Assembly: GCA_030704615.1 (NCBI GenBank)
Contig: CM060733.1
Span: 73,036,001-73,100,000, forward strand
DNA from: Takakia lepidozioides
Taxonomy: Eukaryota; Plantae; Bryophyta
Reading direction: 5' to 3'
DNA length: 64,000 bases
This document shows positions 913-60,640 of this stretch, one piece after another. The notes beneath the pieces are model-generated. The model was not told the origin of the DNA. It searched no databases and was given only the letters and a program-made list of their open reading frames with translations. Numbering within the stretch: position 1 is the stretch's first letter; each line of letters begins with the position of its first letter. The position numbers and the translations under genes are program-made.

Positions 913-3223
913 ATGGGGTCGGGCAAGAAAGAGATGATCCAGGTGAGCCCGATGGGGGCGACGTGTCTCCGAAGCGGCAAATGGAAGAGGCGATTTATGC
1001 TTCTGAAAGCGAGGCCGTTCAAGAACGGGAGAAATTTGGGGAGTCGGAGCCCGAGGACTTCCCAGAGGCTCCGCCAGACCAACAGATGCCTCCCATGCCA
1101 GTAGCCTTTTGGGAAGGGTTGTTGGCGCAGTTTGGCGGGACGTTGAAAGACTTGATGAGGGCGGCTAATGCCACTTCCACTAAGGCGAAGTTCAAGGTGA
1201 AGCCTAAGGAACCAGGCACCTTTGAGGGCGTCCAAAATCGGAAGACACTCAACACCTGGCTCTTGGAGCTGGAGCAGTACTTCCGGGCGGCCAAGTTGAG
1301 TGACGAGGATCGGGTGGAAGTGGCTCCCACCTATTTGAGGGGCTATGCTCAACAATGGTGGCAGAAGCGCCTTCATGACCAAGGGCCAAACCCAGAAACC
1401 TTGAGCTGGAGTGGGTTCAAGGAACTTATGAAAAGACAGTTTGTGCCCCTCAACGCGTCCTAGCTTGTCCGGGACAAGATGAGGAACTTGAAGCAAACAG
1501 ATGACATTCGGGGATATGTTCAGGCTTTCAATATGTTGTTGCTCGAAGTTGCAGATATGGCGGAACCAGAAATGGTCTTCAACTTTGTGGCGGGACTGGC
1601 CCCATGGGCCAGGCGGAAGTTGGAGGAGAGGCCACCAAAGACTTTGAACGAGGCAATTGAAAGGGCTGAATGTTTCTCGGATGTCCCTACGGGCGACAGA
1701 CAAGGCCGTACGGAGCTGAATCACAAGAAGGTCCGGCGGGAGGGTGACTCCTTCCAACCGGAAAAGAAATGGGATAGGCCACGCGGCGACAATGGCACAT
1801 GGAAATCAAAGGGAGGGCCTTTGCACGTCAAGGCGGCGCCCGGTGCTCCGAAAGGAAAATCAGATGCAGCGGCTTATGGTGGACAAAAGGCGACCTTTGA
1901 TGGGGTGTGCTTTAATTGCAGGGAGCCCGGGCACATGGCCAAGAAGTACACAAAACCTCGACAATTGAACATGACTCGGGCGACCATGGAGCTGTCCGAA
2001 GACTCCATCAGCCGCTTGGTGGAGGCGGTGGTCGCCAAGACTGGCAAGGTAGGCAACTACTCTTGTGAGTTGTATCAGGAGACGGGAGCCTTGTGTAAAG
2101 GGAGTCAGTTAATGTTTATGAGCGGGATAATTTCCGGAACTAACGTGTCATTGTTGGTGGACACAGGAGCGTCGCACTCCTTCATGACACCGGCAACAGC
2201 ACGGAAGCTGGGGCTCCCGACAAGTGATGTGGGGGCCTCTATTGAAGTGCGTTCTCCCAAAGAACCACAACTGGCGACGAGGGTGGCATTCGATGTTCCT
2301 CTTCAGTTGGGGAGTTAGGAGGGACGTGACAACTTCACCATTTGCGAGATCAAATGAGTGGATCTCATTTTGGGGATGACCTTTATGGGAAAATCCGGAG
2401 CGGTCATAGATGGCCGCAAGAGAATAGTCACGCTACCGTGTGGGAATGGTGGCAAAGTTTTACGGGTGTCGGAAATGCCCAACCGAGTGGGAGGGCAAAT
2501 AAACCTACTGACAGCAAAGGAGTGGGCCGTGGAGGAGCCACACGAGCCCCAGTTTTTGCTTTACGTGAGACAAGTGGAAGGAGAAGTCGAAAGAGAGCCG
2601 AGCCAAGATTGGATCAAGGGGATCCTGGAGAAATACCAGGATGTGATGCCGGAGGATTTACCAAGCGGCTTGCCACCGTGAAGAGGAGTTGACCACAAGA
2701 TAGAGGTGATGTCGGGATTGGAGCCGCCTGCCAAGGCGCCCTACCGGTTGAGCCACAGAGAGTTGGTCGAGCTGAAGGCCCAGCTCAAGGATCTAATGGC
2801 AGGGGTACATCCGGCCAAGTAAGTCACCTTATGGAGCCCCGGTACTATTCGCAGATAAGAAGGATGGGACGCTGCGGATGTGTGTCGAATACAGGGCTCT
2901 GAAGGTGACTATCAAAAGCCGGTACCCTTTGCCAAGAATCGACGACCTCTTCGATCGGTTGGCAGGAACAAAGTATTTCAGCCAGATCGATTTATGCTCG
3001 GGTTACCACCAGATCCAGATAGCGGAAGGAAATGAGGAAAGACAGCTTACAAGACAAGGTAATCGTACGAATTTTTAGTGATGCCTTTTGGGCTCACCAA
3101 TGCGCCAACAACCTTTAGCACCTTGATGAACTGCCTCTTTCAGGAGTGGTTGGATGACTTTGTGATCGTGTACATCGACGACATCTTGGTGTACTCGAAA
3201 ACGAAGGAAGAGCACCTGGAGCA
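913..3223 (+). pseudogene. gag-pol: Family C gag-protease-RT (chromovirus-like Ty3/gypsy), truncated by the B1 insertion
   Basis: Gag WL.ELEQYF..A..WW, degenerate knuckle CFNCREPGH, protease [34 protein letters not shown] and YIDD. Contains stops and frameshifts. Confidence 0.9.
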
Positions 3224-4836
3224 TGTTAACCGCGGGTTTATGACTTAGACAAAACAGGCTATCAGCACTACTGCCCATTTCCTAAGACATGCAACAGAGG
3301 TTGTCCGACGGTATGCTTTCAGAAACGATTACGAAGTAATTGTTTTAAGGATAGCTAAACCATGCACATCGTATGAATTCATCTCCCTGGAGGCTGCTTA
3401 ATCCTATTGATTAAGCTCAACTTACAGTCTCTTTGGCATGAAAGATCTTAATCGAAAAGACTAAAGTCGTTTCGTTCATATAAACAATTGATAATCAAGG
3501 CAAAACAAGAATTATACTGAGAGGATACACATTCTCACCATCTCACGTTCTCTCATAATGCACACTCTCTCCATCTCACGTTCACTCTACACAGAGATAC
3601 CTCGAATAGCATGTCTTTACTTCAGAGTTCGTCATATCATCACAGAAGTACACATTGAATCACTCTGAGTCCCTGAATACACACTGATCACTGATACTCA
3701 TATTGCTCTCCCTCTAAGTTGCGTGCAGCCTTTTTATACTATGCTCGAAAGAGCCGTTACAGTCTGCGGTCGTTAATGATCGTTTGCCTAACTGCCTATG
3801 CAACCTAAAAGGTTTGCTAAAAAAGTGGCTCATTGCAGTGGTCGTGAGCCATAGTCGTGAGCCATAGTTAAAGGTCTAACGTGCCGATGCTAACGTGTGT
3901 GTGATATCACGGCCCACGGTCACTACACTACCCACTACTGCTCCCGTGGTAATGTACCCTTGTTCCGCCATTTGCTAAGTACCGCGTACTTAGCCGTTTC
4001 TGCCCGTGACCAGGTAGTGTTCATTCATCACTACCCGGTATGTCCCGTTGTGACCCTCGCTGTCTGGCCCTCGTAGCATAGCCGTTATTATTTATTCCCC
4101 CCCTCTTTTGAAATTGTGTCCGCACAATTTTGTCAGTTCCTGTGCTTGCTGTATCTCTTGGGGATGTAGGGTGGTGGCATGCCCGTTTGCGGGGAAGGAA
4201 GTATGTCCCAAGATTGTCGTGGTGGCAGCTTCTTGTTCCTGTTGTCGTCACTATCTGGTTGCTCCTGTGGTTCATGAGTACGCCAGCTTTCGTCATCAGG
4301 GTGTTCTGCTATTCCATCCCCTCGTATCATGTCGATTTTGGTGGTCAAGGTTTCTCGGTAGGTTTGGAGCTCCTCCTTGGTCCAGGGTATAATGTGTTTA
4401 GTCGCCTTGCTGCCCATTAATCAGTTAACAGCTTGGATCCCTGTTTCTCTGAAAGGGTGGTCTCTCTCCTCTTATTCTGGAATTGGTGGCAGGAACTCCT
4501 CATGAATGTCTGTCACCAACTTCGCCAATTGACATTTCATCTGCCTCACCATTGCCCTGTTGAGTTTCTTCATCTCCAGTTCACTCCCTTCATTCAACCA
4601 GGCTATGGCTAAGGCTGCATCTGCTGCATCCAACCCTGCTTGCAATGTCAGCTTCTCCAGCTGCTGCTTCCATTCCTGTTCATTGCCCATGGCAATGTCT
4701 CTTTCTGTGGTGGCTGTAAACAGCCTGCTCTCAGCATTCTCCCTTTCCCTCAGCAGTGTAGTGTTGTTGTTGAGCCAGCAGTGTAGTGTTGTTGTTGAGC
4801 CACTTGGTTCCCTGATCTCTGACAGTCCTCAGCTGC
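3224..4836 (-). mobile_element. Family B copy B1, 3' part: 3' LTR (~3224-4090), PPT (~4094-4110) and internally deleted ORF3 remnant (4133-4836)
   Basis: TGTTAACC terminus at 3224 interrupts the C RT. LTR matches 48550-49178 and 60659-61024. 4472-4836 matches ORF 47638-48126. Confidence 0.85.
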
Positions 4837-5905
4837 TGTCGCGCGGCTTTTACTCACCCATCCCTTCGCTATCCGAGGCGGAAACTCCAAGATAGAAGAG
4901 TTGGAAATCTCTAAGTACTCAGCCCGCGCAGAACAATCAGTCATGACCTACAGCTAGTGTATCATGGGGGTGTTTCCTATTTGTTTCCTTTTCCGCATTC
5001 ATCTTAGCTACCTTACCATTGATAATTAAGTATCAGTTTGCTTCATCAATTTATCGGTTTCCTTCACTCCTCCATTCAATCCACAGCTTCACTCAGATCT
5101 CTCTACACAGTGTGATTGTATCGTATAAGTATCAGATTATGATTTATCAGGTATCAGGCCGAAGCCATTGTGTCTCTATTCTCCTCTACAATATCCCTAC
5201 AGCTTTGCATATAACAAGCATCTACTAATCCTCTTTCCTCCTTCATCGTGCTCACCGACTTCCGCTCCCGTATGACTCCGAAATCCTCCTTCCCGAATAA
5301 TAATCCTCCTCTTCATTCCCCGTTCTCCCTTTATCCTCCTATCCGCGGTTCTAACCGTTTCCCTCTCTAACCGTCGTATGTGAACTAACATGTTCCCTTC
5401 ACAGGTGTTGTTCCCCACAGTCGTTCCCTGTCCTACTCTTCGTTCCCTATTATCGTGACAGCTGTGTCAAGCGGTGACTGGCTGTGTTTGGCTGTGTCGG
5501 GCTGTGACTGGCTGTGTGGCTGTGCCGGGCTGTGACTGGCTGTGTGGGCTGTGTGGGCTGTGACGACTGTGACGGGCTATGTGGGCTGTGACGCTGTGTG
5601 GGCTGTGTGGGCTGTGTGTGTCGACTGTGTTTGGCTGTGTCAGGCTGTGACGGGCTGGTCGGCTGTGTCGGGCTGTGATGAGCTGTGTGGGCTGTGATGT
5701 GTGTGGGCTGTGTGGGCTGTGTCGACTGTGACGACTGTGACGGGCTGTGTTGGCTGTGTCGGCTTGACGACGTGACGGGTGTGTAACCCCCCTCTACATG
5801 CGCTGCTGTCACCCCTAAGGCTCCTGTTGGTCTCAGTCTGTGCAAAAATTAAGGGTACCCTACAGATCCCATATAAGTGTCTAAGTCCCCTACAGTCCTC
5901 TAACA
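4837..5905 (-). repeat. A1 3' LTR with internal ACACAGCC-type array (~5455-5780)
   Basis: TGTTAGAGG...CGCGACA in element sense, preceded by PPT GAGGGAGGAAGGGG (~5910-5923). Confidence 0.9.
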
Positions 5906-5944
5906 TTTACCCCTTCCTCCCTCAAAAAGCCGTGTCCTCACGGT

Positions 5945-8900
5945 TTACTGTTTCCGAGTAGCAACCCTTTGTGAGTGAGCTCCTTGTTGACGTTGAGAGT
6001 TTCGTGGCGGGCTGTGTGTACGAGCCCGAGGTCTGTCTCTGGTTGACGGAGATGGTTGATCATTACCTGGATAAGTGAGGCCTTCTGGAGGCTGATATCG
6101 AGGTAATCTTTCCGGCATAGGAGATCCCCTTTGTTTCTTCTCTTCCATCTGAATTGCATAGTCTTCTCCCATGTCAAAAGAATTCTGTGAAGAAACAGTT
6201 GTATCAGAATCCTCATCGCCCTCTCAGGTGTTTTAATTTTGAACTTTTTGTGGAATCATCTTGGGCATACAATGCTGTCCTACCATGTCTGGAAGTTTGC
6301 ATTTTACAACCTGGTGTAACCGTTGAACAGCAAAATTGGTGTAGACACTGAGCTCCTTGTCTGTCCAAATGAGTGGTGGTACCAATTACTGGTGCAGCGT
6401 GCAAGTATTTCCATGCGATATGTCCCTTATAGAAAATGTCATCAAGTCCGAATTTCTGTGTTGACAAATGTTGCAGGCTGCTTGAAACCATGAACGAATT
6501 TGAGAATCCTTCTGTATCATAACTTTTGGGTCATATAGGTACATATGAGGTGGCACCGAAGGTAATACCCAATGATCTCCACTGGAGTAACTTTGAAAGC
6601 GTGCTTGCATCTTTTGTTGCTCAATGTGGTAACGTATCAGAAAACAAGCAGCGTAGTATAGCCCGCACCCCATGACAATACTTGCTATTCCTTGGTCTTG
6701 GTATAAATGAGTCCATGTACAACCTGGAAAGCAACCAATTCCCTCAACATGGTACCTGCCTCGTGCCAGTATTGTGCAAAGTGATGATCTTCAATATGTC
6801 GATTGTTTGGAAGAACTTTAGTCCTGGTTGCCACTGGCAGCCAAATACGCATGATTTGGTAGTAATGTGCGAATGACTGCGGAGGACTAAATTCTTTCCA
6901 AGCCAAATCCAACATGATGGGAATTTGGTTGAAGGGCATAATCATAGCCCTACTGTACTCCCTGGCAGCTGGAGTTTTAGGTGGGTTAAAAGCTGCATTG
7001 CCCCATACCTCCGGCTGTGGTGGCTGTGGTGTGGTTGTAGTAACCACAGGTTCAGCTACTGGTACACTGACCTGTTGTGGTGGTGGTGGTACTGGTTCCT
7101 GTACCATTGGCATCTCCTGCACCTCCTGTGAAGACTGAAAAGCCAGAGTTCTGGCTTGCAAATAAGAAGCCATTAGCTGTTCCTGAGGGATATAGACTCT
7201 TTGGTCGATGTTTGAAGTGAGGTCTTCCACTTGAGTCTGGAGTCCGTCTACATCCTCTTGTAACTCTGCTATCCTACTATAGACATTGTCTATAGTAGTT
7301 GTGGCAATGTTCTGCACCTGCAGTCTGAGCTCATTCATCTCGCTTTGGGTGAGCTTCCGTGGGGCTTTGCCTTCTACTGGCCCTTGTGCTAACCAGACCT
7401 GCATAAGGCTGTTATCCACCAAGCTGCTTGTGGTTCCCCTGAGAGTTTGCTCCTCTCTTAGCTTATACAATTCCAACTGCTGTTGTAAAGCCTTCATGCG
7501 CTTCGCCTGTGGCTCAACCAATTGCGCATAGGCAGCAAGTAGATTATTGGCTTCCTTCGAAGCCTTGTTACTGACCGCGATTTCATTTCTATTGGCCACG
7601 ATGGTTTGTTGCAACTCCACGATGTATTTCTCTTGCTCAGCTTCCATCTGCCTGTATTGCTTGAAAGTATCTTCATTGCGACAGATTGTATTCTTCATAT
7701 CGACAATGAGCTTCATGTGCTCCACATTCTCTTCTTCTGCCTTCGTACATTTTTCCGCTTGACTGTTTATTTCTTTTGTGATTGGTCAAGCATAGTTGTA
7801 AATGTAGCGCATTGTATCGCCATCCTGTTATGCACTGTCTGCAACTCCGTATGTAGTGCATTCAGTTCTTGCAACTTGCTTTCATGCTGCACCTGCATTT
7901 GGTATAGCTGTTGCTTATGTGCTTCGTGCAACTGGTCTTGCGCGAGGCCTGCCTCAATCAATTGTTGCTTGGCCAATTGCAAAGCCATTTCTGTATTGGC
8001 CAAGTCCTGCTTCATCTTGAGAGTGACCTCTTCATCGACCTTGTTTGCACACTCAGTGGCAAGTCGAGCCTCAAACTCCTTCCTGAGTTCTTCTTTCAAG
8101 GCTGTCAATTGGGTAATTGGAACATGGGTTTTGACATAAGTCCCCAACAAATTAAGTGTCCTGCCTATGGAACTCATCAGCATTGCCTGTTGAGGGTCAT
8201 CATGGTGAGGTTGCTGCTGTTCCTCCTGATCTTCAACAGAGTATGATGTCTCACTAACCATTCAGACCATTGTCCCACCGGATTTTCTTCCTGAACTACT
8301 TCATTTATGACCGGTGCTACAGTGTCATGGCCTTCCGCCTGTGGTACCTCCGACACAGGTGTGTGCATTATATGTACCTCAGGATTTCTCTTGGGCAACT
8401 GTTGCACCTCTGGGATTTCTGTCTCCTTGACCAGACCAGAATATTCATAGAGAAGGTCCCCTTTCTCTATTTCTGCCACTATCTGTTCTGTAGTTGGAAT
8501 ATCTATCCCTTCACTTTCCAAATCAATTATTTCGGGTTGAGCTGCATGGATAACTTGTGACCTTGTGACAAGTCGTTCAAGTGGCTGTGTTGGTTGTGAT
8601 GCAGAAGTAACTTCTTCCTCCCTCTCTGAAGGTCCTGCTTCCAGTAATAACATTCTTTTGTGCTGCTGTGCCCCTTCCTGGTCATGAGCTTGGGAAACAT
8701 TATCATGCGGAATCCGTGAAGCCAGTGGATCCGCCACTACAGTCTTTCCCCTTCTCTGCCTCTTAGTCTCGGGTTGTGCTGCTAGTCCACCCTCACTGTG
8801 TGAAGAGCCTTGCTCTTCCATTGCAGTTGTTTCTGGCTCAAACACTCCCATTTCCTTCCTTTCTTGTGCATTAAGTATGCCAGAATCAAGGATTATTTGA

Positions 8901-9494
8901 GCAATGATTGGGCCAGACACTATGATAGGAGATTTTGCGGTAGTACCTTGTAATCTTTTCATCTCCTCTACCAGTGCGTTGTACATTATGTCCGCCCATG
9001 TACCTCTTGTCCCTTCAAGCCTTTGAGGATTTCCTCTGTGAAGGATCTGCTCAAATATTGTTGGTTCTGTTTCAGGGCAATCAGAACGTTCAATACTTGG
9101 CCTATGTCTTTTAACCCTGGGTACACAGCTTTGGTACAAGCATAACCCTGAGTTTTAAAGAAACTCCCTTCTTGGAATAAATCCCCTATTTGCAGTCTTT
9201 CCCTGTGTTCCTCCACATACACATGACCTGCTGGCAATCGAAACAATTGCTGGAGGTATAGGGGAGTAATCATTAATTCAACTCCCTTCACCGTTGTTGT
9301 TCCTGTCTTTGGCTCAAAGTTCTGCAAAAATTGTAACATGTACTGTCTATGGTGTAGTGTCCAATCCATGCTTTGCAATCCTTCCAATCTCAGCTCCTTC
9401 AGTATCTTTATCGCCTGTGGGGTAGCCATCGTTTTTTCTGCAGAATTGTGGTGCTCTTCACCCTGATTTCCTCCATTCCTCTCACTCTCTTCAT
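5945..9494 (-). CDS. A1 ORF3, large accessory protein (split by 1-bp frameshifts)
   Basis: ORF pieces 8986-9429, 8177-9139, 7767-8261, 6685-7725, 6386-6673 and 5945-6172 are colinear with A3 30043-33595. Confidence 0.8.
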
Positions 9495-10179
9495 CTTAGA
9501 CTCACAGAACTGCTTTGGCTGTAACAACTGCAGGAATGCCTGTAGTGCACAAAGCATAAACGTATGGTTGCCGCAGAAAGCTATGGGTAATCTCTTGTAA
9601 GCCTGCGGGGCTTGCAAGCATTGTTCAAGAGAAAAGCTCTGCTCTGTCGTTTCGTGTCTATGCCACTGCGTAAGTAATATTGCGAGCGTATAGTCTGTTA
9701 GTTCCTCCATAGTTTCCAAGTTATAGCATTTATGGCCTGTCCTGTCGAGACGCCCGTTACTCAGAACGACGCCGCCTCTTGCGCTCAATTTCCCTCCATT
9801 TTCTTGATCATTTTTCTGGTTTCTATTGGCTGTATCCGCTGTGACTGGATTTTAACTTTTATCTTCTTTAGTGGACTTTCCCTGTTGGATAGTCCACTAG
9901 GATCACACATGCGACATGAATTCGGCTTTTCTGTACTTGCCGTTCGTTCTGTTTCCCTTTTTCCGTATTCATTAATGGGCCCGCCTTTCATCCCTTTTGA
10001 CGGCCGTTCTTGTCTCTCTTTCTTTTTGACACCTGTCCTTGCACTTCATTCTCTGCTGTGTGTCGCACCCTGACCTCCACGTGTCTATTTTTAAATAATT
10101 TCCGTTTCTTCTTCCTTCAGCCATTTTCCTGAAGTTTTATGTGTCCACTTGTCACTGATTCTATGGATCGTGTAACTTT

Positions 10180-10480
10180 AGTAGGCTGTGTTGAGCTGTG
10201 ACAGGCTGTGTTGTGTTGTGTTTGTGTCATATGTGTTACGCTGTGTGTATGTGATAGGCTGTGTGCACTGTGGTAAGTGTGATAGGCTGTGACACGCTGC
10301 GGTAGGGTGTGATAGGCTGTGTCACGTCGTGACGGGCTGTGATGTGATGGCTGTGTCACGCCGTGATGGGCTGTGATAGGCTGTGTCACGCCGTGATGGG
10401 CTGTGATAGGCTGTGTCACGCCGTGATGGGCTGTGATAGGCTGTGTTGCGCCTTGCTGGGCTGTGATAGGCTGTGTCACG
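10180..10480 (-). repeat. 30-bp tandem array between pol and ORF3 (A1)
   Basis: Unit CTGTGTCACGCCGTGATGGGCTGTGATAGG with 10-bp sub-periodicity. Confidence 0.9.
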
Positions 10481-13400
10481 TTTGTTTTGCCCACCTCGGT
10501 CATATATACTGGGCCTAGCGACAAGTGTTCCATACTCCGTTCGTAACACTGGTGCAGCCCGTGACTGCTCTTGCGGTTCAACATGCAAATCATGCTGCAG
10601 GGGTTTGTCATGGATACCACTGTACCCCTTCAACTTATTTGCATTGACTCTTCCCAGCATTTCTTTGTTAATGGTTTGTAACATGGCTGTGTTGTTATCA
10701 TACATCTTTTGTATGACATAAGGTCCTTTCCATGGTGATTTAAGCTTAGAAGCTTGAATCTTTCCTTTCTTCTGCAACCATAGAACCAAATCCCCCGTCT
10801 TAAAAGTCTTTAACTTGCCTTCATCAAACTGTTCCTTTCGCTTCATCTGAATTCTGGTCATATTATCAGCTGCATCAGCACGTACTTCTTCCACATGGTA
10901 TAATTCATGTTTCCTGACCTTGATGGAGTCTTGCAATTCCATTCTTTTTCCCCACTCCGTTCTCATGGTAGGTAACAGGAATTCCACTGGAAGTAAGGCT
11001 TCCATACCATAAACTAATTGGAATGGTGTATACTTTGTGGTGACTTTATACGAAGTCCTGTATGACCATAAAGCTGTCAGCAGCTTTGTATCCCAATCCG
11101 TTCTGTTTGCATTGACTATCTTAGCCAAGATAGTACATAGTATTTTGTTGGTAGCCTCTGCCTGTCCATTACCCTGTGGGTAATATGTTGTACTCTTTCT
11201 ATGCACAATCATAAACTCTTTAGTCAATAACTCAATGGTCTCATTCATGAAGTGACTTCCTTGATCACTGATAAATTCTAAGGGACATCCAAATCGTGTA
11301 AGTATGTTCTCGTACAGGAACCTTGCTGTGGACTTGGCTGTGTTGTCCCTCAAAGCTTTAGCTTCCACCCACTTTGTAGTATAATCAGTGGCTGTAATTA
11401 TGTACCTGTTTTGTGTATTCTTGGATGGTGGATTAATTGGTCCAACAAAGTCTAGTCCCCATTTCTGAAATGGTTCCGTAGGCATTGTAGGATGCAAGGC
11501 CATTCTTCCAGATCTCTGCAAAGGTCCTAGCCTCTGACATTCATCACACTTCTGACAATACTCATGTACATCTTTGAACAAAGTAGGCCACCAGTATCCT
11601 GCGAGTAGTATCTTTCTACTGGTAGTCTCTTCTCCAAAATGACCTCCAGCCACTCCTTTATGAACTTCCTCCAAGACTTTATTTACTTCATGGTGGTACA
11701 AGCATCGTTTTAGTACCCCATCAGGTCCTAACTTATACATTCTGCTTCCTACCATAGTATAAGGTAAAGCTTTGATAGCGATTCTCTTCCTCTGCCTTAC
11801 CATAACTAGGTGGGCACTGACCATGAGCAAGGTAGTATCTGATTGGCCACTGCCAATCTAACCATTCATCTGCACTCCTTGCACCTCCATTACAAATAAA
11901 CTCGCATCAGGTAACTGATCGTCCACTCCTGTGGCGGCCTCTCCTGTTGTTAGTCGTGACAAATGATCTGCCACAAGATGCAAACGGCCAGGCTTGTAAA
12001 TAACCTCGAACTCAAACTCATGCAAAAGATTATTAACCACCTCGCTATCCTTCCACTTATCAAAGGTTGTTCACCAGATATATCAGAGCCTGGTGATCCA
12101 CATAAAACATAAACTTTCTTCCCAATAGGTAATGCCTGAATTTCTTCACTGCATAGATCATTGCCAATGCTTCTCTTTCCGTTGTGCTATAGTTCCTCTC
12201 AGCACTGTTCATCAACCGGCTAGCATAGTACACAGGTGAATCTATATTCCCTGTAACATTCTGGGCTAACACCGCTCCCAACGCTTCTCCTGATGCATCG
12301 CAGTGAACATGAAATACTACATGCCAGTGAGGGTTAATCAGCACAGGTGTAGTTGTTACTGACAGTGTAAGTTCCTCAAACGCCTGTTGACATTCAGCTG
12401 TCCATGCAAACACTGCATCTTTCTTCAGAAGCTTGCTCAATGGTGCTGCTATTTGTGCATACCTTTTGACAAATCTTCTGTAATAACTGGTTTGCCCAAG
12501 GAATCTCCTTAAACTCTTAACATTCACTGGTGGTGGAGAGGCTTTAATGGACTCTGTCTTCCTGGGATCCACAAGGAGTCCCTTCTTACACACAATGTGT
12601 CCCAGAAGCACCCCTGAGTTCACACAGAAAGTACACTTCTCTGGGTTCAAGCCCAGACCTCTCATCCTGCATCTGGCCAGGCATAACTCCAATTTATGCA
12701 AGTGCTCATTCTTAGAGCTGTACACACTGAAATCATCCAAAAACACCTGCATGAAATCATCCAGATACTCTTGAAAAGATTCACTTATCACTCTCTGAAA
12801 GGTCGCTGGTGCATTACAAAGTCCAAAGGGCATGACTTTGTATGCATAAGCCCCCCAGTCTGTGATGAAAGCTGTTTTCCCTTGGTCTTCTTCTGCCACT
12901 TGCACTTGATTATAACCACTGAAGCCATCCATGAATGAGTACATCTCATGGCCTGCCACAGTGTCTAATACTGCTTCTGTGAATGGCAAAGGGAAGGATC
13001 TTTCTTCGTACAAGCATTCAGCTTCTTATAGTTCACACATACTCTTAGTTTGCCATTCTTCTTTGGAACTATAACAATGGGTGACAACCAAGTTGTATTA
13101 CTCTATTGGGTATATAAACTTAGCCTCAGCCAACTTCTTTATCTCTTCTCCAACCTTCTGTGCGTAGTTGGGATTCATTCTATACCTCGCCTGCTTGATT
13201 GGTACTGACCCTGGTTCCAGTTCAATCTTATGCTGACAGACTTCAGGTGGTATCCCTTTTAGATCCTCATAGCTCCAAGCAAATACATCTCTGTATTTGA
13301 TGAACAAGCTTTTAGCTTCTTCGAAGAACTCCGGCTCCAAATCAGCTCCTACTTTCACCATCTCGGTTCCTCCTGAGTTCCCACATTTACTTCTCTCACC

Positions 13401-14397
13401 TGCTCATCAGCTGTGATTGTCCAACCAGTCACCACTTCATCCTTTAAGCTCACAGTGGCTGGTTCTTCTAGGATTTCTATTCTCCCTCCTTTTCTTCATA
13501 GAAATGTGGTGGGTAACAGTTGGTTTCCTCTTCAATTGGTGTTGCTGTCACTACACCACAGCAGATACCTCTTCAAACAACTTAGGCTTTCCAGCCGCAT
13601 CTCCGCAACCTGCTCCCATCTGGGTGTGCAGCAAATAGGGTAGCTTCCTGCTCCTCATCCAGTCCTCCCCTCCAGTCATACTCTCTGACTCCTCGAGGTC
13701 TTCTTGTAGCAGGTAATCTACTAGATTTCTTTGTGGTAATTTGTATCTCGTGCATCCCATTATGCACAGTTAGTAACTGAGAATTCCAGTCATGGAATAC
13801 CCTGGCCTGTTTCAGCCACGGACGTCCCAATAATAAGGAGTAAGCCTCCATGACTTCATCCATTTTTAATACAGTTACTGTGATCATAAAGATCATTTTC
13901 TGTATCTGTATCTTAACTCCTCTTATTAATCCCAATGGCTGCACACTTCTTTGATCTGCCATTGTTACTGTAAATGGGGCTGGTTTCATGTTACTTAGAC
14001 CAAGCTTCTTCCTTAATTGGTCTGTCATGATATTTACTCCAGAACCACCATCTATCAGTACATCAGTTAGTTCTGTGCTTCCAATTCTCAATTGGATTAC
14101 TGGCATAGAATCATCAAAGTCCATGACTGGTTCTCGCCCTTCCGGCTTCACATATAACTGGTCACCTTGCTGTTCAGGTCTGTGTTTCGTCTCTTGGGCA
14201 ATTCGATTGATTGCCTGATACAGCCTGTGCCTACAATAAGGTGCCACAGCTAATAGCTGTCCAATGGTAATTTCTGCTTTGGTCTGACATATTACTTCAG
14301 CCAAAGTCTCTTCATTACTTTGCATGTCTGCATCTTCTTTTTTCCTTTCTTCCTCACTCCCCTCTTTTTCTCCATCCGAATCAGAGGAATCTGCCAC
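10322..14397 (-). CDS. pol: A1 pol: protease, RT, RNase H, integrase (frameshifted)
   Basis: [71 protein letters not shown]. No chromodomain. Confidence 0.93.
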
Positions 14398-14410
14398 AGG
14401 AATATCAGTA

Positions 14411-16603
14411 CTACTCTTTGCATTTCCTTATAGTATCTGCCACTTCCTTGTGCAGTTCCTTCTCATCCTTCCAAGTCTCTTCATCTTCAGGCATATCATT
14501 GCCACTTCCAGTCTCATCTTCTTCCTCTTCTACTGGAGGTATTAGTTTGGCTTTACTTCTTGTTACTATCATTGTACTTACTTCTGGTACAACACATGGC
14601 CTAACCATGTGAGCTGCCACCACTGGGCCCTCATTCACAGGAGCTCTCATCTCATTCTGGTGTCTTATCCAGAATGAACAGGCTGCCTTGCGATGTCCTG
14701 GCTGATTACAATAGTAACATAGCTCTTCACCATTGGGTCCTCGCCCTTGGTCTGGTCTTGGATTATTTCTATAATCCTGATTCCCGGGCTGGTAATTCCC
14801 CCTTGGATTACCCTGATAGTTGCCTCTGGAATTTCCTTGGTAATTCCCTCTTGAATTACCTCTCCCTTCCATGCCATTGTTATAACCACCAGACCTACCA
14901 TAGTGGTCCTGATCATTGCTTCTTCTTGGCTGGGGCTGCACCTGATGCACCCTCACTTGCCTAGGTTCTCTTGCAGCTGTCCTTCTGTTGTAGTAACAAT
15001 TCTCAGTAGAATGGTTATCCATTTACAGATAGTACAGTGTTTCTCCTTCATGTGGCATTCTGTAGTGGTATGGCCTTCATTCTGGCACTTTGCACACCAT
15101 ACACCCTTCCTCCAATGTTTGCAGCCTCTGTGGCATACTTCTTCAAGATTTCTTCCAATCTTTTCTCATAGTTATCCCTCTTCAACTTTTCCTTTCTCTT
15201 ACTCTTTCTTTTAGTTCTTGCTCTTCTTCTTCATCTGACTCATCTTCAGAGTCCTCATCTTCCTTTTTCTCTCTCCTGAGCATTCCAATTGCTCAATTCT
15301 GTTTGCAGTTTCAAATGCCTCCTCCACTGTATTATGGGGTAACATATCCACTTTCTTCTGCAACTCTGGTCTTAGTCCACTCACAAACCAAGTCTTCTGT
15401 AAACGGGTGCTGGTACTGCAGCCAGCTTTTTCATCATCAATTCCATCTTCTCCATATACTCTTCAACAGTTTCATGCTTCTTCTGCTTCAGCTGTTGTAA
15501 ACTTCCATACACTTCATCCTCAGTTTTACTTGTCCTGAACCTATTTCGAATGCTGTATTCAAGCCATTCCAGGTTAGGAAATGATTATCAGGGAATCTTG
15601 CATACCATTCACTTGCTTTCTTGATAAGTGAACAAGGAAACAGTCTCATCTTGGCATCATCGCCATTCTCATTGTTCACTATACACATGTGCTCAAATTG
15701 GCTAATGTGTACATCGGGATCCCCTTTTCTGAATATATTGGAAAGGGTGGTTTTGCCCGTGTGGTTGTAACGCCATCTGTGGCCCTACCTTCTGCCCACT
15801 GACAGGTGCTGGCACCTTGCTGGTGCTGGTCCTTCTGGACCTGTTGTTTTGTGGTGGATCTTCCACCAAGTGGTGGCCCTTGAGCACTCCCTGCTTCTGG
15901 CCCCACGATATTCACAGTATTCCCAGCTTCAGTTGCACTACTTCCCACACTCCTGTCCCCCCAGAGCCAGATCCAGGCAGCCCGCCTGATCCCCCTGAGC
16001 CGACACCTTCGTTGGCCTGTGATCCAAGTGCTCCACTTGATCCAGGTCCAACGGGTTGGGATGTCCTGGTTGTAGTCTCAACCTCAGCTGTTGGGTCTAC
16101 TTCTTCATATTCTTCCTCTTCCAATTTCTCTCTCTGTTTTCATCCTCCAAGTTCTGCCCTTGGGTTTCTTCTTCACTCATGTAACTCAACTGTAATGGTG
16201 TTGGAGAGTCTGAACTCTCCGTTGGCTCTGCCACATCCTCATCTCCTTCTTCATCTTCTGCTTCAGAAACTGGGAGTTCCTGCTTTTGGTGTTCCATGCC
16301 AACTCTTATCAAAGATTTCTGTCAAGTCTTTTATCCAAGGATGTACCTCAGATCTTTCACCTCGGATTGATCTTCTTCCTGTACCAATTCCCTTAATCTT
16401 TCTTGCAAAGAAACAGAAGGAGTGGCATCCAACTCTAGTTCTTCCGGTATAGGTGATGCACTTTTTGATCTTGATGGTGTGAGAGGTCCAGATGATTCCC
16501 CTATGTCTATTCCTCTCTCCAAAGATATGGATAATTAGCTTTCAGATAGCTTTCTCTTTTGATGAATATCTTGTCGTCGTCTAGCTTCTCTTTCATCACT
16601 CAT
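14411..16603 (-). CDS. gag: A1 gag with three CCHC zinc knuckles (frameshifted)
   Basis: KMRLFPCSL..ASEWY gag core; knuckles CAKCQNEGHTTTEC, CTIC..DNHSTENC (frameshifted) and CYYCNQPGHRKAAC. Confidence 0.85.
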
Positions 16604-16693
16604 GTCCCATGTCTTTCATTTCTTTTAATGTGGCAATAACCAAAAACTCTCTTCTGTAATATCTCTCGTATATGCCTGGATTTCTTTCAAGCT

Positions 16694-17181
16694 TCAATGC
16701 ACCTTGGCTATACTTGAAGTCTCCGTTACCATATAACCATATGGCAAACAAGTCTGAAAAGCTGTTCTTGGTGTGAGTTTGATCCACAAAATATCCTTTG
16801 GAATCCAATTCTTTACCAGTACAAGCTCTTCATGCATATGAGTATAAACATTCACCTTTCTTTCTTCCCAGCCTTCAAACTCTACTCGTTTAATGGATAG
16901 CAACGCTATCACATAAACTATGTTGGTAACCAACGTGCTCTTCCTCTACAGGCTACCTGATAAATCTTATCACTCCTTTCTCCAGACCCCATTCTGGATC
17001 AGCATCATGCACTCGTTTAAGAATATTTTCTTTACATCCGTCTGGCAATTCCAAGAACCTTTGAAAGAATTGTTTGGACAATCTTTCTTCCTTCGTTCCA
17101 CAGGGAATTTGATTCACTTCAAATTCTTTAATGGTCCAACCACCATGATCCCCCAGATGCCTGTCACATCTGGTTGTTCAT
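16694..17181 (-). CDS. A1 ORF0, ~160-aa accessory protein between PBS and gag with an F-box-like motif (frameshifted)
   Basis: Manual translation GWTIKEFEV..KQFFQRFLELPDGCKENILKRVHDADPEWGLEKGVIRFIR / VIALLSIKRV..WIPKDILW aligns with B ORF0 at 60201-60630. Confidence 0.65.
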
Positions 17182-17190
17182 GTCCCAGGT

Positions 17191-17207
17191 CCCCAGTATG
17201 GTCGCCA
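17191..17207 (-). promoter_or_regulatory. PBS, tRNA-Arg-like (TGGCGACCATACTGGGG)
   Basis: 2 nt after the LTR CA. Resembles the complement of plant tRNA-Arg 3' ends (...GTCGCCA). Confidence 0.75.
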
Positions 17208-17209
17208 AA

Positions 17210-18445
17210 TGTCGCGGGCTTTTACTCACCCATCCTTCGCTATCCGAGGCGGAAACTCCAAGATAGAAGAGTTGGAAATCTCTAAGTACTCAGCCCGCGC
17301 AGAACAATCAGTCATGACCTACAGCTAGTGTATCATGGGGGTGTTTCCTAGGTTTACTCACCCATCCTTCGCTATCCGAGGCGGAAACCCAGATAGAAGA
17401 GTTGGAAATCTCTAAGACTCAGCGCGCAGAACAATCATCATTGACCTACAGCTAAGTGTATCATGGGGGTGTTTCCTATTTGTTCTTTTCGCATTCATCT
17501 AGCTACCTTACCATTGATAATAATATCAGTTTGCTTATCAATTTATCGGTTTCCTTAACTCCTCCATTCAATCCACAGCTTCACTCAGATCTCTCTACAC
17601 AGTGTGATTGTATCGTATAAGTATCAGATTATGATTTATCAGGTATCAGGCCGAAGCCATTATGTCTCTAATCTGCCTCTACAATATCACTCTAGCTTTG
17701 CATATGAAAAGCATCTACTAATCCCTTTTTCCTTCATCGTGCTCTCCGATCTCCGCTCCGTCTGTCTCCGAAGTCCTCCCGAATAATGATCCCCTTCATA
17801 TCCCCGTTCTTCCCTTTATCCTCCTATCCGCGGTTCTAACCGTTTCCCTCTCTAACCGTCGTATGTGAACTAACATGTTCCCTTCACTGGTGTTGTTCCC
17901 CACAGTCGTTCCCTGTCCTACTCTTCGTTCCCTATTATCGTGACAGCTGTGTCAAGCGGTGACTGGCTGTGTTTGCGTGGTCGGGCTGTGACTGGCTGTG
18001 TGGCTGTGCCGGGCTGTGACTGGCTGTGTGGGCTGTGTCTGCTGTGTGTGACGACTGTGACGGCTGTGTGGAGGTGTGGGCTGTGACGACTGTGAGGCTG
18101 TGTGGGCTGTGTGTGGCTTGTGACGACTGTGACGGGCTGTGTGTTGGCTGTGTGGGCTGTTTGGTGTGTGACGGCTGTGTCGGCTGCTGTGTGACGGCTG
18201 TGTGTTGTGGTTGTTGTGTGTGGACGACTGTGAGGGCTGTGTTGGCTGTGTGGGTTGTGACGACTGTGACGGGCTGTGTTGGCTGTGTGGCTGTGACTGC
18301 TGTGTCGGCTGTGTGGGCTATGTAACCCCCCTCTACAGTGCGCTGCTGTCACCCCTAAGGTTCCTGTTTGTCTCAGTCTGTGCAAAAATTAAGGGTACCC
18401 TACAGATCCCGTATAAGTGTCTAAGTCCCCTACAGTCCTCTAACA
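17210..18445 (-). repeat. LTR shared by A1 (as 5' LTR) and A2 (as 3' LTR), with a ~130-bp duplication at 17220-17478
   Basis: PBS on one side and PPT (~18449-18460) on the other. Confidence 0.85.
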
Positions 18446-33633: not shown

Positions 33634-34623
33634 TGTTAGAGGACTGTAGGGGACTTAGACACTTATACGGGATCTGTAGGGTACCCTTAAATTTTGCACA
33701 GACTGAGACAAACAGGAACCTTAGGGGTGACAGCAGCGCACTGTAAAAGGGGGTTACATAGCCCACACAGCCGACACAGCAGTCACAGCCCACACAGCCA
33801 ACACAGCCCGTCACAGTCGTCACAGCCCACACAGCCGTCACAGTCGTCACAGCCCACACAGCCACACAGCCCACACAGCCGTCACAGTCGTCACAGCCCA
33901 CACAGCCCACACAGCCCGTCACAGTCGTCACAGCAGACACAGCCCACACAGCCAGTCACAGCCCGACACAGCCAAACACAGCCAGTCACCGCTTGACACA
34001 GCTGTCACGATAATAGGGAACGAAGAGTAGGACAGGGAACGACTGTGGGGAACAACACCAGTGAAGGGAACATGTTAGTTCACATACGACGGTTAGAGAG
34101 GGAAACGGTTAGAACCGCGGATAGGAGGATAAAGGGAAGAACGGGGAATAGGAATGGAATTATTATTCGGGGAGGACTTCGGAGACAGGCGGGAGCGGAG
34201 ATCGGAGAGCACGATGAAGGAGAAAAGAGGATTAGTAGAAGCTTGTCATATGCAAAGCTAGAGTGATATTGTAGAGTAGATTAGAGACATAATGGATTCG
34301 GCCTGATACCTGATAAATCATAATCTGATACTTATACGATACAATCACACTGTGTAGAGAGATCTGAGTGAAGCTGTGGATTGAATGGAGGAGTTAAGGA
34401 AACCGATAAATTGATGAAGCAAACTGATACTTAATTATCAATGGTAAGGTAGCAAAGATGAATGCGGAAAAGGAAACAAATAGGAAACACCCCCATGATA
34501 CACTAGCTGTAGGTCATGACTGATTGTTCTGCGCGGGCTGAGTACTTAGAGATTTCCAACTCTTCTATCTTGGAGTTTCCGCCTCGGATAGCGAAGGGAT
34601 GGGTGAGTAAAAGCCGCGCGACA
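33634..34623 (+). repeat. A3 3' LTR with internal array (~33760-34010)
   Basis: Follows PPT GAGGGGGGAAGGGG; ends CGCGACA. Confidence 0.92.
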
Positions 34624-35285
34624 TCACTGTTGTCTTCATTCTTGCATTCTGATTCAGTGTCATAAACCTGGAACCAATGTAGATCTGGCTTGTTTGTTTG
34701 GAGAGATCAATGATGGTTAGCTGGAGTTGCAAAAAAAAAACATGGAAAGGATAAGGTGATTTCACTATGGGATCAGGATCTGAACAACTGCGTTCCACAG
34801 TTGAAGGGAAAAGAGGGATGTTGGGGTATTTGGGTTGAAGTCTGACAAAAGAGATGAGAGCTGTTTGAGCGATGGGTCATTGGAAAAAGGGACAAGAGAG
34901 AGAGAAAGAGAGAGAGACTGATGGATGGGATGGTTGTGTCTTGAGAGACCGAGGATGACTTCAAGGCTGGCCGCACTGGATGCCTAGCAGCGTGTGCATT
35001 CACATTACATGACAGATCTGCTGCTGTGAAATAGTGGGGAACCTGGGGACATAGACAGAGATAGTGAAACAGACAAAAGGGGAAAAGAAAGAGAGAGAGT
35101 GAAAAATGGGATTTGGGTAAGGAGAGAGCTGCAATTCAAAAGGGCTGTTGGGGGGGGGGGGGGGGGGGGGGGTTGGCCAATTTGGGGAGATGAGATGAAG
35201 AAAACCTGAAACCTGAAAGAAACCAGTGCCCCTGCAGACCATGAAGATCTGAGCTGCCTCCTCCTAAATCTGTGTCACCACTACA

Positions 35286-36579
35286 AAAAGGGGATTTCCG
35301 ACCTGTCACTGCTCAAGTGGGCTTCACATAAAGGATCGTGTTTACCGCTGCCATTGGGCTGATTTGCATCACTGAATACATCGCACCAGCATAGCTGGTG
35401 CTGTACCTGCTGATAGGGGATGTTGTGTAAAAGGTAGAACCAAGAGTGAACAACAAATTGACTCCCCATCCATGTCTTCCCTTCCGCTGCGGCGTGGATG
35501 AGGATTGCTTGAACTCTGATCACGGAGGAGCTGAGGGAAACCCACAGCCAAGTGACGACAGTTGGACAGATTAGAAAGAACGCTTCTTTCCTCCTGCTCC
35601 GCAATCAATGGAGGGGAGCACAATTAGAATTATACAGAAGGGGATTCACGCCCCTTCTTTTGGTATCAGAGCTACGTTGTTAAATCTTGATTTCTACTAG
35701 CTAGGGATCTTGACTGGTATTGGATGGTTTGATGGCAGGAAGAGACCACACACTGATTCCTGATGAACCAAGCATTGGAGATGTGCTGATTTGCTTCAGC
35801 AGACGCACACCAAATGCACACGCAGACCCTTGTTTGTACTTCTTCAACCCTGCTTGGAGAATAGCGAATGGTGATTTATGTCTTAGAGTAATACATACTG
35901 GTGGAAGAACAACCATAGCACTTTGGATAAGAGAGTTAGGAAGGTGGGTGAAGATAAATACCATGGCACGAGAGGTGACATGGGAGGTAGAGTAGAGATG
36001 TTGCGAAATGGACAGTGGGAGTGGTATAGAGGTCAACATTAAGGGAGTTGCGGGAAAATTAGAGTCAGAATTAGGTGTTGAAACAGTTTGAACTTTGACT
36101 AGAGAATAGAAGGATGACCAGTCCAACCAGCATAGATGCGCCTTATCATGGTAGGAATAGTGAGGATGTAAATGACTGGCTGGAGAGGATTCAGATGGAG
36201 GCAGATGTCAGGGATTTGAATGAGGACAAAACTTTCAAGGTAGCAAGGCTCAACCTGAGATCCAAGGCTGATGAATGGTACCGTAAACAAAACCCTAGAC
36301 CAAACAACTGGGTGGACTTTAGGGCAGCAATTTCAGCCAAGTTTGGTATTGTTGACTTGGCAGAAATTAGGCTAAGAATGGATACCATTAAACAGGAGAG
36401 TAGACAAAGGGTTCAAACATACTTCGATAGGTTGAACCGGTTATTTATAAGAAGTGGGGCGTCTGATTTGGAACAGAGGCGTAGATTTGCAGCAGGTTTG
36501 AGACCAGAAATAGCAAGAGTAATGCTGGGAAGGCGCTTCCTTGATGTAGAGGAAGCACTTGACACAGCCATTGAGATTG
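35286..36579 (+). mobile_element. Family E copy E2, 5' part: putative LTR (35286-35658), Met PBS (35661-35672), ORF0 and truncated gag (36114-36579)
   Basis: TGGTATCAGAGC; gag DWLERIQMEA..KADEWY; homologous to 56770-57815 on the minus strand. The LTR start is tentative. Confidence 0.8.
35732..36042 (+). CDS. E2 ORF0, ~103-aa unknown protein (1-bp frameshift near the end)
   Basis: MAGRDHTLIPDEPSIGDVLIC..., colinear with 57307-57618. Confidence 0.7.
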
Positions 36580-37061
36580 CGTGGTCCCGTGATGTTGCCC
36601 AAGGAGGTCTCGTCGAGCACCGCAAGTCCGATGTCTGAAAAAATGGCGCCGAATCTCCAGTTACATGGCCCAAGAACTGCCCAACATCTGTGCAATCCCC
36701 TGCACCATGTACCGAAATTCGGCGCCACATTTCCAAATTTTGGACTTACACACTTGTCATGTTGGGACCTATAGCCGCGAAATTCGGCACCATTTTTCGG
36801 CGCGAAATTCGGTGTCATTTTTGCAGATGTCGCTCGGAATTCGCATGAGCGGAAGACAAAATATCATGAGCACGGCTCTCAAAACTACAATTTTTATTTT
36901 AAACAATGAATATTATATTGGGTTTTCTGACATATTCTATTAAAATAATGTTTTTAATGTTTTTTATTTCCAAAATTTGTACTTCCGCTCATGAAAACCG
37001 ATTGTCTTGCTACTCCGCTCATGCCGCTCATGCCGCTCATGCTCATGAAATAGCTAACCTC
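36580..37061 (+). mobile_element. MULE 3' arm fused to E2 gag
   Basis: Reverse complement of ~61025-61552; ends (CC)GCTCAT repeats then GAAATAGCTAACCTC. Confidence 0.85.
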
Positions 37062-48549: not shown

Positions 48550-49178
48550 CCGTTTACCACTATGGCTCACGACCACTGCAACGAGCCATTTTTTAGCAAA
48601 CATTTTAGGTTGCGTAGGCAGTTAGACAAACGGTCATTAACGACCGCAGACTGTAACGGCTCTTTCGAGCATAGTATAAAAAGGTTGCACGCAACTTAGA
48701 AGAGAGAGCAATATGAGTATGAGTATCAGTGATCAGTGTGTTTTCAGTGTGTACTTCTGTGATGATGTGACGAACTCTGAAGTAAAGCCATGCTATTCGA
48801 AGTATCTCTGTGTAGAGTGAATGTGAGATGGAGAGAATGTGCATTATGAGAGAACGTGAGATGGTGAGAATGTGTATCCTCTCAGCATAATTCTTGTTTT
48901 GTCTTGACTACCATCTGCTTATCTGAACAAAGAGGCTTCAGTCCTTTCGACTAAGGTCTGTTATGCCAAAGAGGCTGTAGATTAGGCTTAATCAGTATGA
49001 TTAAGCAGCCTGTAGGGATATGGCTTCATACGACGTTCATAGCTTAGCTATCCTTAAAATGATTACTTCGTAATCGTTCCTGAAAGCATACTGTCGGACA
49101 ACCTCTGTTGCATGTCTTAGGAAATGGGCAGTAGTGTTGTTAGCCTATTTTGCCTAAGTCATAAACCAGTGGTTAACA
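48550..49178 (+). repeat. B2 3' LTR (5' part and PPT deleted)
   Basis: Reverse complement of ~3224-3860; ends GGTTAACA and abuts A4 ORF3. Confidence 0.88.
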
Positions 49179-52100: not shown

Positions 52101-52888
52101 ACAACCTTACACAGCCTATCACAGTCTATCACAGTCTATCACAGCCTGACACAGCCCGACACAGTTAACCAGAGCCCGACACAGCTTGACACAGCTCAAT
52201 ATAGCCAGTCACAGCCCGGCCCAGTCCGACACAACCAGTCTCAGCCAACACAGTTGGGCACAACCCGGGAACGGTTACCATGGCAGGGAACGACTGTGTG
52301 GGAACGACATCGGCAGCAGGAACGTGTATTCTATCTGATGACAGTTAGTTAGTTAGGCAGTAGAATAGCTTGCAGGTAGAAAAGACAGAGTAGCAATGGA
52401 GGGAGGGCACTTCTTGGATCATGACTTGGCCATCAGGAAGGGAAGGACGATCTGGAGTTGAGGAATGGAGAGCGCAGTAAAGGAGGAGTCACGAACTGTT
52501 GATGCTTGATTCATGCAAGCTGTAGAGTTATACTGTAGAGCAGACTAGGGACACCATGCTTCGCCCTGTTAACTGATAGATCATAATCTGATACATATTC
52601 TATACTCACACTGTGTAGAGAAACCTCGTGAAGCTGTGGAATGAAGAGATGAGTGATTGGAACATGATGGATTGCTAAAGCAATCTAGTGCTTGAATATA
52701 AACAGTAAGGTAATTCGCTGACATGAAGACAAGAAAGAATACAAACAAGAAGCACTTCCATGATACACTAGTTGTAGGTCATGACTGATTGTTCTGAGCG
52801 GGCTGAGTGTTTAGAGATATCCAACTCTTCTATCTTGGAGTTTCCACCTCGGATAGCGAAGGGATGGGTGAGTACAAGCCGCTTGACA
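49179..52888 (+). mobile_element. Diverged family A copy A4: ORF3 3' two-thirds (49180-51878, with stops), PPT and 3' LTR (51916-52888)
   Basis: ORFs align with A3 ORF3; LTR TGTTAGAGG...GCTTGACA with an ACACAGC array at ~52040-52260. Confidence 0.9.
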
Positions 52889-54302
52889 GGGCGGACTTTC
52901 TAGCTACATACGGATGCTGGGGATTGGAGCAGTGCTCACACAGGTGGATGATGAGGGAAGAGAGTTTGTAGTGGCATAAGTTAGCCGCTCAAACAATGAT
53001 GTCGAGGCAAAGTATAGTTCCTATGAAGGGGAGTGTCTAGCTGCAGTATGGGCAGTGGCACATTTTAGATGCTACGTCTATGACAATCTCTTCACCCTTG
53101 TCACGGATCACCAACCATTGAAGTGGTTGATGGAGTCAGACAAGCTTACAGGGAAGCTTGCACAATGGGCACTTATGCTTCAAGAGTACGACTTCCAGGT
53201 GGTGCATCGAGCCGGAATAGTCAATCGGGATGCGGAGGGTTGAGTCGCATTCCATGCACAAGTGAGCTTGATGATACAGGAGCTCGTTGGCATGGTGAGA
53301 TGGACGAGGAGATGGTGTCAGGATGGCACGCATCTGCCTTTTTATGCATTCTAGCAATGGGAGCTCAAGCTGGTCCATCCCATGTGATTGGTCATAGAGA
53401 TAGTGTGCATGACGATCCAGAGATCAGTGAGGAGCTTGGTGGTGCTAAGGATATACATGAAGATCCAACAGTGTTGGCCTACCTTCGTACTAGAGAGACA
53501 ACAGCCAGTGTGACTGCTAAGGAGAGAGATCGGATCCTACAACGAGCCAAGAGGTTCAAGTGGGAGGGGACTCACCTACTCCGAGTATGGGAGGATGGAG
53601 AGGGTTGTGCAAACAGTCAAGCGAGGCTTGCGCAAGTATGGCTTGCAAAAGGGACACTTGGGAGATTGGGACCTTCAGCTACCTTGGTTGGCCATGGATT
53701 ACAGGTTTAGCAAGCAAGCATCACTTGCCTCGTTCTCGCCTTATTTCCTTCTCTTTGGCTGAGAGCCGGATTTGCTTGCATCTATTTGCAGGGAGACTGC
53801 AGCAGACCTCAACCTTGATGATCCGGATGTATGGACACAAGCATGTGCCCAACGGGCAGAGTTGTTCAAGAGAGTCATGCCTATGGCTTTTGAGAACCTT
53901 GATATTGCCCAACACTAAGACACATTGAGGTACGTCACTATACATGGAGGGAGATATCAACCAGGTGTTCGGCGTTTCCATCCTGGGGACTATGTGTATC
54001 TGCAGCAGACAGCGCCTACGACCTTGGATGTCTCAGCAGGTCGTGTGATTCTAAGGGTCCGGGAGGTGTTGCCTTCGGACCATGTGCGCAATTGTGCGAT
54101 ATGTCACCTTCCACATGTGAATGGGAGGATAGATCCCAACCTTGCAGTGGTACCTGCAGGATTGCGTTGCATGCTATGTGGGCATGCTGGTGGTGCCGCG
54201 ACCATGTTGGTGTGTGACAAATGCTCAAGGGGGTGGCACATGGGATGCTTGACACCACCACTTGAGGAGGTTCCTGGTGGAGAATGGTTGTGTCCATGAC
54301 GC
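52889..54302 (+). pseudogene. pol: Family D pol remnant: RNase H, partial integrase and C-terminal PHD finger
   Basis: GIGAVLTQ..YSSYEGECLAAVWAV..TDHQPLKWL; RFHPGDYVYL; CMLC..LVCDKCSRGWHMGCLTPPL..GEWLCP. Confidence 0.87.
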
Positions 54303-60630: not shown

Positions 60631-60640
60631 ACCGTTAGTT

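Follow-up and report, generated by a model that had tools for sequence, protein, structure and literature searches.

A conserved open reading frame in the leader ahead of gag in Ty3/gypsy retrotransposons of Takakia lepidozioides

Does the leader of an abundant plant retrotransposon, between its primer-binding site (PBS) and gag, encode a protein of its own, and what would such a protein do for the element? Plant Ty3/gypsy elements are known to carry extra open reading frames (ORFs) upstream of gag, and to our knowledge no function has been established for any of them. The locus that raises this question lies in a window of 64,000 nucleotides of Takakia lepidozioides DNA (the whole stretch analyzed here), in which self-comparison and an ORF listing identified a large Ty3/gypsy LTR retrotransposon, here called family A, that is present in several copies. 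An initial annotation had placed a hidden ORF, ORF0, in the leader of one copy (element A1) and in that of a second element, B3, and had suggested that its product may be an F-box-like SCF adaptor or silencing suppressor.

Element A1 spans ~4834-17345 (12.5 kb) on the minus strand, as delimited by self-comparison and the ORF listing, and all of its features given below lie on that strand. Pfam placed a CCHC zinc knuckle at 14414-15022, an aspartic protease at 13585-14427, RT and RNase H at 12063-13025 and an integrase at 10325-11857, past which ~5.5 kb of additional ORFs gave no Pfam match. The recognizable start of Gag, a capsid-like region at 15491-15784, was found by alignment to the Gag of L002 (40% over 58 amino acids), an apparently intact related element on a JGI metagenome contig of 9859 bp. 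The integrase of L002 is ~48% identical; in general, relatives of the family A integrase reach 46-59% identity at best, and the named ones come from a fern (Adiantum) and from liverworts (Riccia and Calypogeia), which by itself points to a host that is probably a non-seed land plant with proteins of its own absent from the databases. The ORFs of L002 comprise one for gag-protease of at least 1150 amino acids, one for RT-RNase H-integrase of 853 amino acids and a third, of 963 amino acids and without Pfam match, which parallels the long 3' ORFs of family A. The 5' LTR of A1, defined by alignment of LTR copies, lies at 17210-17345 and measures 136 bp, compared to 138 bp for the A-type LTR in other copies; LTRs of just 136-138 bp thus flank an element of 12.5 kb. 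Directly adjoining it is the 3' LTR of another copy, A2 (17346-17475), which is 93% identical to it with 8 gaps, the two 12.5-kb elements standing head to tail with their junction within 17210-17475. Family A was very abundant, at very high depth, in public runs.

We observed that the leaders of A1 and B3 are alike as protein and not as DNA, as had been claimed. A blastn comparison of the A1 leader (17181-16694) with the B3 leader (60630-60249) gave nothing significant beyond the 24-nt PBS. By contrast, when the A1 pieces were searched by tblastn against the whole window, the B3 leader was the sole match, and it was colinear (E values of 1.5e-5 and 1.2e-4). In tblastx between the two leaders, the chain of sense frames ranked top, with a sum E value of 4.6e-12. 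All peptides quoted in the initial annotation were found on the minus strand of both leaders, and both copies are indeed broken by frame changes. In A1, segment 1 (16956-17177) is open for 74 codons, with an F..LP..I motif (17057-17022) and conserved WGL..GVI..IR, and segment 2 (16697-16945) is open for 83 codons in another frame, with conserved I.L..IK.V and WIPKD. Their counterparts in B3 are 60586-60386 and 60404-60249, respectively.

The two elements also share their priming signal. The PBS 16-mer of A1, TGGCGACCATACTGGG (17207-17192), has one further exact copy in the window, at 60656-60641 (2 matches in total, with 0.01 expected), and the LTR end plus PBS of A1 at 17189-17212, which would lie inside ORF0, is identical to B3 at 23 of 24 positions. 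The B3 PBS was thereby located, by blastn and the 16-mer search, at 60661-60638 on the minus strand, next to an LTR-like repeat of 370 bp (60655-61024, minus strand) that is unrelated to the A LTR. The ORF0 homologue of B3 (60249-60660, minus strand) consists of three frame pieces, 60660-60508, 60586-60386 and 60404-60249; its PBS reads in frame with segment 1, and the reading is broken by 2 in-frame stops and a pair of frame changes. Apart from the ORF0/PBS match to A, the interior of B3 lacked gag-pol and resembled nothing else in the window, and B3 is therefore a degenerate or nonautonomous element.

Coding potential was assessed from natural variation in family A, using differences carried by at least 10% of the contig depth in public runs. 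Fifteen such common variants fall inside the two segments, with 12 on codon position 3, 3 on position 1 and none on position 2 (binomial P = 2.9e-4). Thirteen of them are synonymous in the claimed frames, compared to 1-2 in the other frames (P ≤ 2.8e-5 for 13 or more out of 15). The pattern held for both parts: 9 of 11 variants were synonymous in segment 1, and all 4 were synonymous third-position changes in segment 2. Over 98.7 synonymous and 372.3 nonsynonymous sites of the two segments, pN/pS was 0.041. The initial annotation had named a dN/dS near 1 as the sign of a noncoding leader, and the family A variants, together with the codon-position pattern between elements, gave the opposite result. 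Indeed, in 67 aligned codons of A1 and B3, identity at codon positions 1, 2 and 3 was 48%, 72% and 36%, respectively, and the same codon was used for just 10 of 28 identical residues. It is thus strongly supported that the ORF0 leader is protein coding and that both segments are under strong purifying selection, and the idea of a hidden conserved ORF ahead of gag stands. At 17090-17094, three linked variants of equal depth combine adjacent E-to-K and K-to-E swaps with one synonymous change. These swaps are the only two replacements among the 15 variants, and they look like a charge-preserving pair inside ORF0.

The extent of ORF0 was then estimated at both ends. There is an ORF at 16694-17181, where it had been annotated, but that interval is too short: the frame appears to run on through the PBS into the LTR and, at the other end, down to ~16625. 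Downstream of segment 2, in the tail of ORF0 (16591-16696), each of the three frames runs into a stop codon between 16627 and 16591, and the common variants listed affect none of these stops. Since all three frames are closed there, ORF0 is separate from gag. Upstream, a candidate start ATG lies at 17315-17313, at LTR position 31. Its frame remains uninterrupted for 108 nt, ending precisely with the LTR, in the three natural LTR copies compared (the A1 3' LTR, the A3 3' LTR and one B-type fragment, at 4815-4974, 34486-34646 and 52750-52905), and it is cut in the A1 5' LTR, which is two bases short. Continuing from the LTR ATG across the PBS gives the only frame in which a variant at 17183 (44% frequency) is synonymous, and another variant, at 16680, is synonymous in the frame expected past the length difference at 16701.

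The window copy of ORF0 is interrupted by ~6 single-base length differences. Relative to the copies in public runs, differences are listed at 17233, 16966, 16701 and 16642 and at no fewer than 8 places farther downstream, with a loose end at 17152. The distance from 17315 to 16625 is 691 nt in the window. A net difference of +5 is obtained from the LTR (+2, one of the two missing bases being also the one listed at 17233), 17152, 16966 and 16701 (+1 each), 16642 (-1) and one further base (+1) that we infer. The resulting 696 nt correspond to 231 codons plus a stop. The contig of run X7 over 16763-17182 shows 3 gaps with a net gain of 3 bases, which leaves room for exactly one such base, between 16965 and 16920. 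Most likely, then, working copies carry ORF0 as a single ORF of ~231 codons from 17315 to a stop at 16627-16625, the LTR start and the 696-nt length being deduced from the listed length differences and the one added base. With a start at LTR position 31, U3 could be no longer than 30 nt, and such a length is difficult to reconcile with an LTR promoter.

Twelve length differences are listed in 15700-17345, and in 10 of them the window is one base short within a brief stretch of T or C; two homopolymer bases of this kind also separate the 5' LTR of A1 from its 3' LTR. The single-base breaks look like homopolymer assembly errors, or like decay or a shared defective subfamily, and such differences affect every ORF call in the window. 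In 16680-16110, from the ORF0 tail onward, a single frame has 10 of the 15 common variants on its third position, though that frame has stops here, and the listed indels are apparently paired with unlisted compensating ones (7 gaps with a net of +1 in X7).

Three other readings of the leader bear on its coding status and its boundaries. Were it noncoding, the peptide likeness would be due to chance or to a conserved RNA or DNA signal. Both copies are interrupted, no database homologue was found and none of the public runs holding the stretch was an RNA run, as such a reading would have it. It is nevertheless close to refuted by the low pN/pS and the excess of synonymous changes, by an A1-B3 identity at position 2 that is twice that at position 3, and by the top rank of the sense frames in tblastx where blastn yields the PBS only. 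We regard it as highly improbable that recoding joins the two segments, segment 2 of working copies being read, as in B3, in the -1 frame relative to segment 1. With the listed difference at 16966 alone, segment 2 of family A does fall in the -1 frame; the two frames overlap by 19-25 nt, and TGTAGA occurs where the second frame opens in both families. A slippery site of the form X XXY YYZ, however, is missing from the overlap in both families. Moreover, one of the gaps of the X7 contig in 16763-17182 is a third, unlisted one-base gap that is needed between 16965 and 16920, the other break being in the LTR according to the natural LTR copies, and the count fits a single ORF. Decidedly unlikely, too, is that ORF0 is the N-terminal domain of one long Gag, from which it would be separated only by damage in the window copy. 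The many single-base breaks of this copy, the long N-terminal extension in the gag-protease ORF of L002 and the codon phase favored by the variants in 16680-16110, which suggests coding soon past ORF0, are all compatible with a long Gag. Against it stand the nonpolymorphic stops in all three frames, the length count that closes the ORF exactly at 16627-16625 and the lack of similarity between the L002 extension and ORF0.

We then searched for relatives of the ORF0 protein. An exhaustive profile search with the segment 1 alignment against 1.84 billion representative proteins revealed no relative; its 4 matches were spurious, being repetitive proteins matched in 5-18 stretches. ESM Atlas feature searches with both segments gave no usable match. 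AlphaFold2 models built on two-sequence alignments were of low confidence (pLDDT of 58 for segment 1 and 48 for segment 2) and suggest two helices around an LP loop, followed by strands alternating with helices. Four loci obtained via integrase homologues (L001-L004, including L002) contain no ORF0, and their PBS differs. A metagenome scan for the PBS 16-mer returned 120 stretches, 39 of which resemble an LTR end followed by the PBS; these 39 elements contained no ORF0 homologue detectable by tblastn, hmmsearch or phmmer. No source contig was taken to be human, and the further analysis covered those from outside gut metagenomes. Many LTR elements on such contigs (L007, L015, L022-L025, L028 and ~30 more) have the same PBS preceded by the LTR end AACATA[GT], and the metagenomic elements with this PBS carry long ORFs from 100-300 nt downstream, none of them like ORF0. 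The absence of ORF0 from L001-L004 and from the 39 elements with the same PBS indicates that it is confined to a narrow clade. As no homologue was found beyond the host genome and close relatives, a function cannot be transferred from any known protein.

This leaves the F-box proposal, in which ORF0 would be a minimal adaptor working as polerovirus P0 does, by binding SKP1 of the host and bringing about the destruction of a silencing factor. The pattern F-x-x-LP-x6-I is indeed common to A1 and B3 and lies in the selected region. B3 also fits the hydrophobic helix-1 pattern LP-x-x-[ILVM]-x3-[ILVM]-[LFIM]-x-x-[LIVM], and the poor AlphaFold2 model has LP in a loop just ahead of a helix. As in the cellular F-box (PF00646 and PF12937), I-[LF]-x-x-[VI] follows six residues after LP, in a predicted helix. 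In hmmscan searches with every A1 and B3 piece, however, F-box, F-box-like and Luteo_P0 gave no Pfam-A match at an E value of ≤10, and sub-threshold matches to DUF5342, Ta1207 and UCR_Fe-S_N (searches at E values of ≤0.01 and ≤10) were attributed to chance. Profile searches of all PDB chains with both segments (E value of ≤10) gave no F-box protein either, and no chain at all below an E value of 0.18. Moreover, the motifs are common: LP-x6-I occurs ~30 times per 100,000 residues, the patterns tested overall occur 5-45 times per 100,000, with unrelated integrases included, and the helix-1 pattern occurs 5-14 times per 100,000, integrases again included. In 124 fetched proteins, nearly all of them integrase homologues, the helix-1-like pattern was encountered 9 times. 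A1 itself does not fit the strict helix-1 pattern, having C and K at hydrophobic places, and it lacks the hydrophobic residues at +3/+4. The distal part of an F-box, the lack of which had been conceded from the start, was not found: the sole conserved W lies 18 residues past LP in a W-G-L context, ~8 residues too early for the third-helix V-x-K-x-W expected 26-28 residues past LP. Unlike in cellular F-box proteins, the motif would stand in midprotein, at about residue 91 of 231, and no substrate-binding domain is recognizable.

The resemblance to P0 is likewise partial. P0 proteins carry LPxx(L/I)x10-13P and a C-terminal (K/R)IYGEDGx3FWR (PMC7582759). Like P0, ORF0 would be a small accessory protein whose frame comes first in an RNA genome that infects or resides in plants (PMC7582759, PMC6410027 and PMC6593998), and in A1 only, LP, a conserved WG and a C-terminal IY-x7-F follow one another in the order seen in P0 (PMC6410027 and PMC7582759). 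The IY-x7-F, in the tail of A1 at 16673-16644, has a spacing that recalls the C-terminal motif of P0. Neither P0 consensus is satisfied, however: the regular expression LPxx(L/I)x10-13P fails on A1 (C at the L/I place) and on B3 (distal P missing), GEDG and FWR are missing from A1, and B3 has nothing comparable to IY-x7-F. The common motif, the failed P0 consensus and the lack of a profile match thus leave the F-box reading unsupported; what remains of it is a spacing pattern of four residues, to be expected ~5-30 times in 100,000 residues, and we consider an F-box-like adaptor very unlikely.

The most fitting category for ORF0 is that of the 5' extra ORFs (eORFs) of plant Ty3/gypsy elements, of which it is a new one akin to Ogre ORF1 and Retrosat2 ORF0. 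It lies in sense orientation between the PBS (17207-17192) and Gag (~15784), its two segments covering 17177-16697, and it has its own stop codon and shows coding constraint. In rice, an "ORF0" without a known function, evolving more rapidly than pol, is found in Retrosat2, RIRE3 and RIRE8 (PMC3485330). The corresponding frame of Ogre is ORF1, and eORFs of the Tat lineage occur at unconventional places, some with a plant mobile domain (PMD) or Transposase_28 (PMC4408406, citing Steinbauerova et al. 2011). ORF0 resembles the Retrosat2/RIRE3/RIRE8 ORF0 and Ogre ORF1 in being an extra sense ORF between the 5' LTR and gag of a large plant Ty3/gypsy element, in being lineage restricted and fast evolving with some constraint and no assignable function, and in being accompanied by long extra 3' regions. 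Unlike these ORFs, to which it has no detectable similarity, ORF0 gave no Pfam match to PMD or Transposase_28 at an E value of ≤10 and so belongs to none of the named eORF families. It is also much smaller (~231 codons), is found with an LTR of ~136 bp instead of kilobases, and apparently begins in the LTR and takes in the PBS. The REXdb survey scored eORFs only at 250 codons or more (PMC6317226), and an ORF of 231 codons would therefore escape such surveys. The Tat/Ogre clade is marked by an additional archaeal-type RNase H (aRH) in pol (PMC6317226). In the A1 pol, the Pfam matches were RT_RNaseH and RT_RNaseH_2 only (12063-13025), and the integrase ORF comes directly next; a further RNase H of the archaeal type was not seen in that interval, and A1 is at most a candidate member of the Tat clade. 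A more distant parallel is Glyco-Gag, which is encoded in the retroviral leader upstream of the gag AUG as an in-frame N-terminal extension of Gag. ORF0 is similarly a coding sequence in the leader, but it is cut off from gag by closed frames.

We consider it likely that ORF0 is a genuine accessory gene encoded by the element, namely, a 5' extra ORF of ~231 codons that starts at the LTR ATG of a 12.5-kb Ty3/gypsy retrotransposon. Translation would begin 31 nt into the LTR, continue past the LTR end, over the PBS and across both segments, and terminate at 16627-16625, a few tens of bases ahead of the gag region. ORF0 would then be the first cistron and first long ORF of the genomic RNA, translated by ordinary scanning. 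Since gag follows after a short gap in which all frames are closed, its translation would depend on leaky scanning or reinitiation. The maintenance of ORF0 by selection, among lineages that amplify, implies that its protein benefits the element, and a protein without known domain may thus serve the element's own propagation. We can only guess at its role, which most economically could be that of a partner of Gag or of the genomic RNA or that of an antagonist of host defense. More specifically, ORF0 could be a counterdefense or host-adaptor protein of several divergent gypsy families in a single plant lineage, made as the first cistron from the ATG of a minimal 136-bp LTR with the PBS doubling as codons. 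We hold this to be unlikely; if true, it would make ORF0 the counterpart, in a plant LTR retrotransposon, of viral suppressors of silencing like P0, with or without the involvement of SKP1.

The accessory gene reading draws attention to a small leader ORF with unusually clear purifying selection in an extremely abundant family, common at the protein level to a second family with an unrelated LTR. Moreover, ORF0 apparently overlaps the LTR end and the PBS, such that the same bases would act as primer site and as codons. If ORF0 helps to evade silencing or to recruit a host factor, it could help account for the very high copy numbers of such families in large plant genomes; as a partner of Gag, it would be an extra component of the Ty3/gypsy particle.

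With regard to its surroundings, B3 appears as an insertion of ~3.3 kb (57723-61024) in another gypsy-like element, an uninterrupted homologue of which (35624-37061) joins 57722 straight to 61025. The LTR-like repeat of B3 recurs at 3223-3589 and at 48813-49182, and the second of these copies is directly joined to a 3' fragment of an A-like element.
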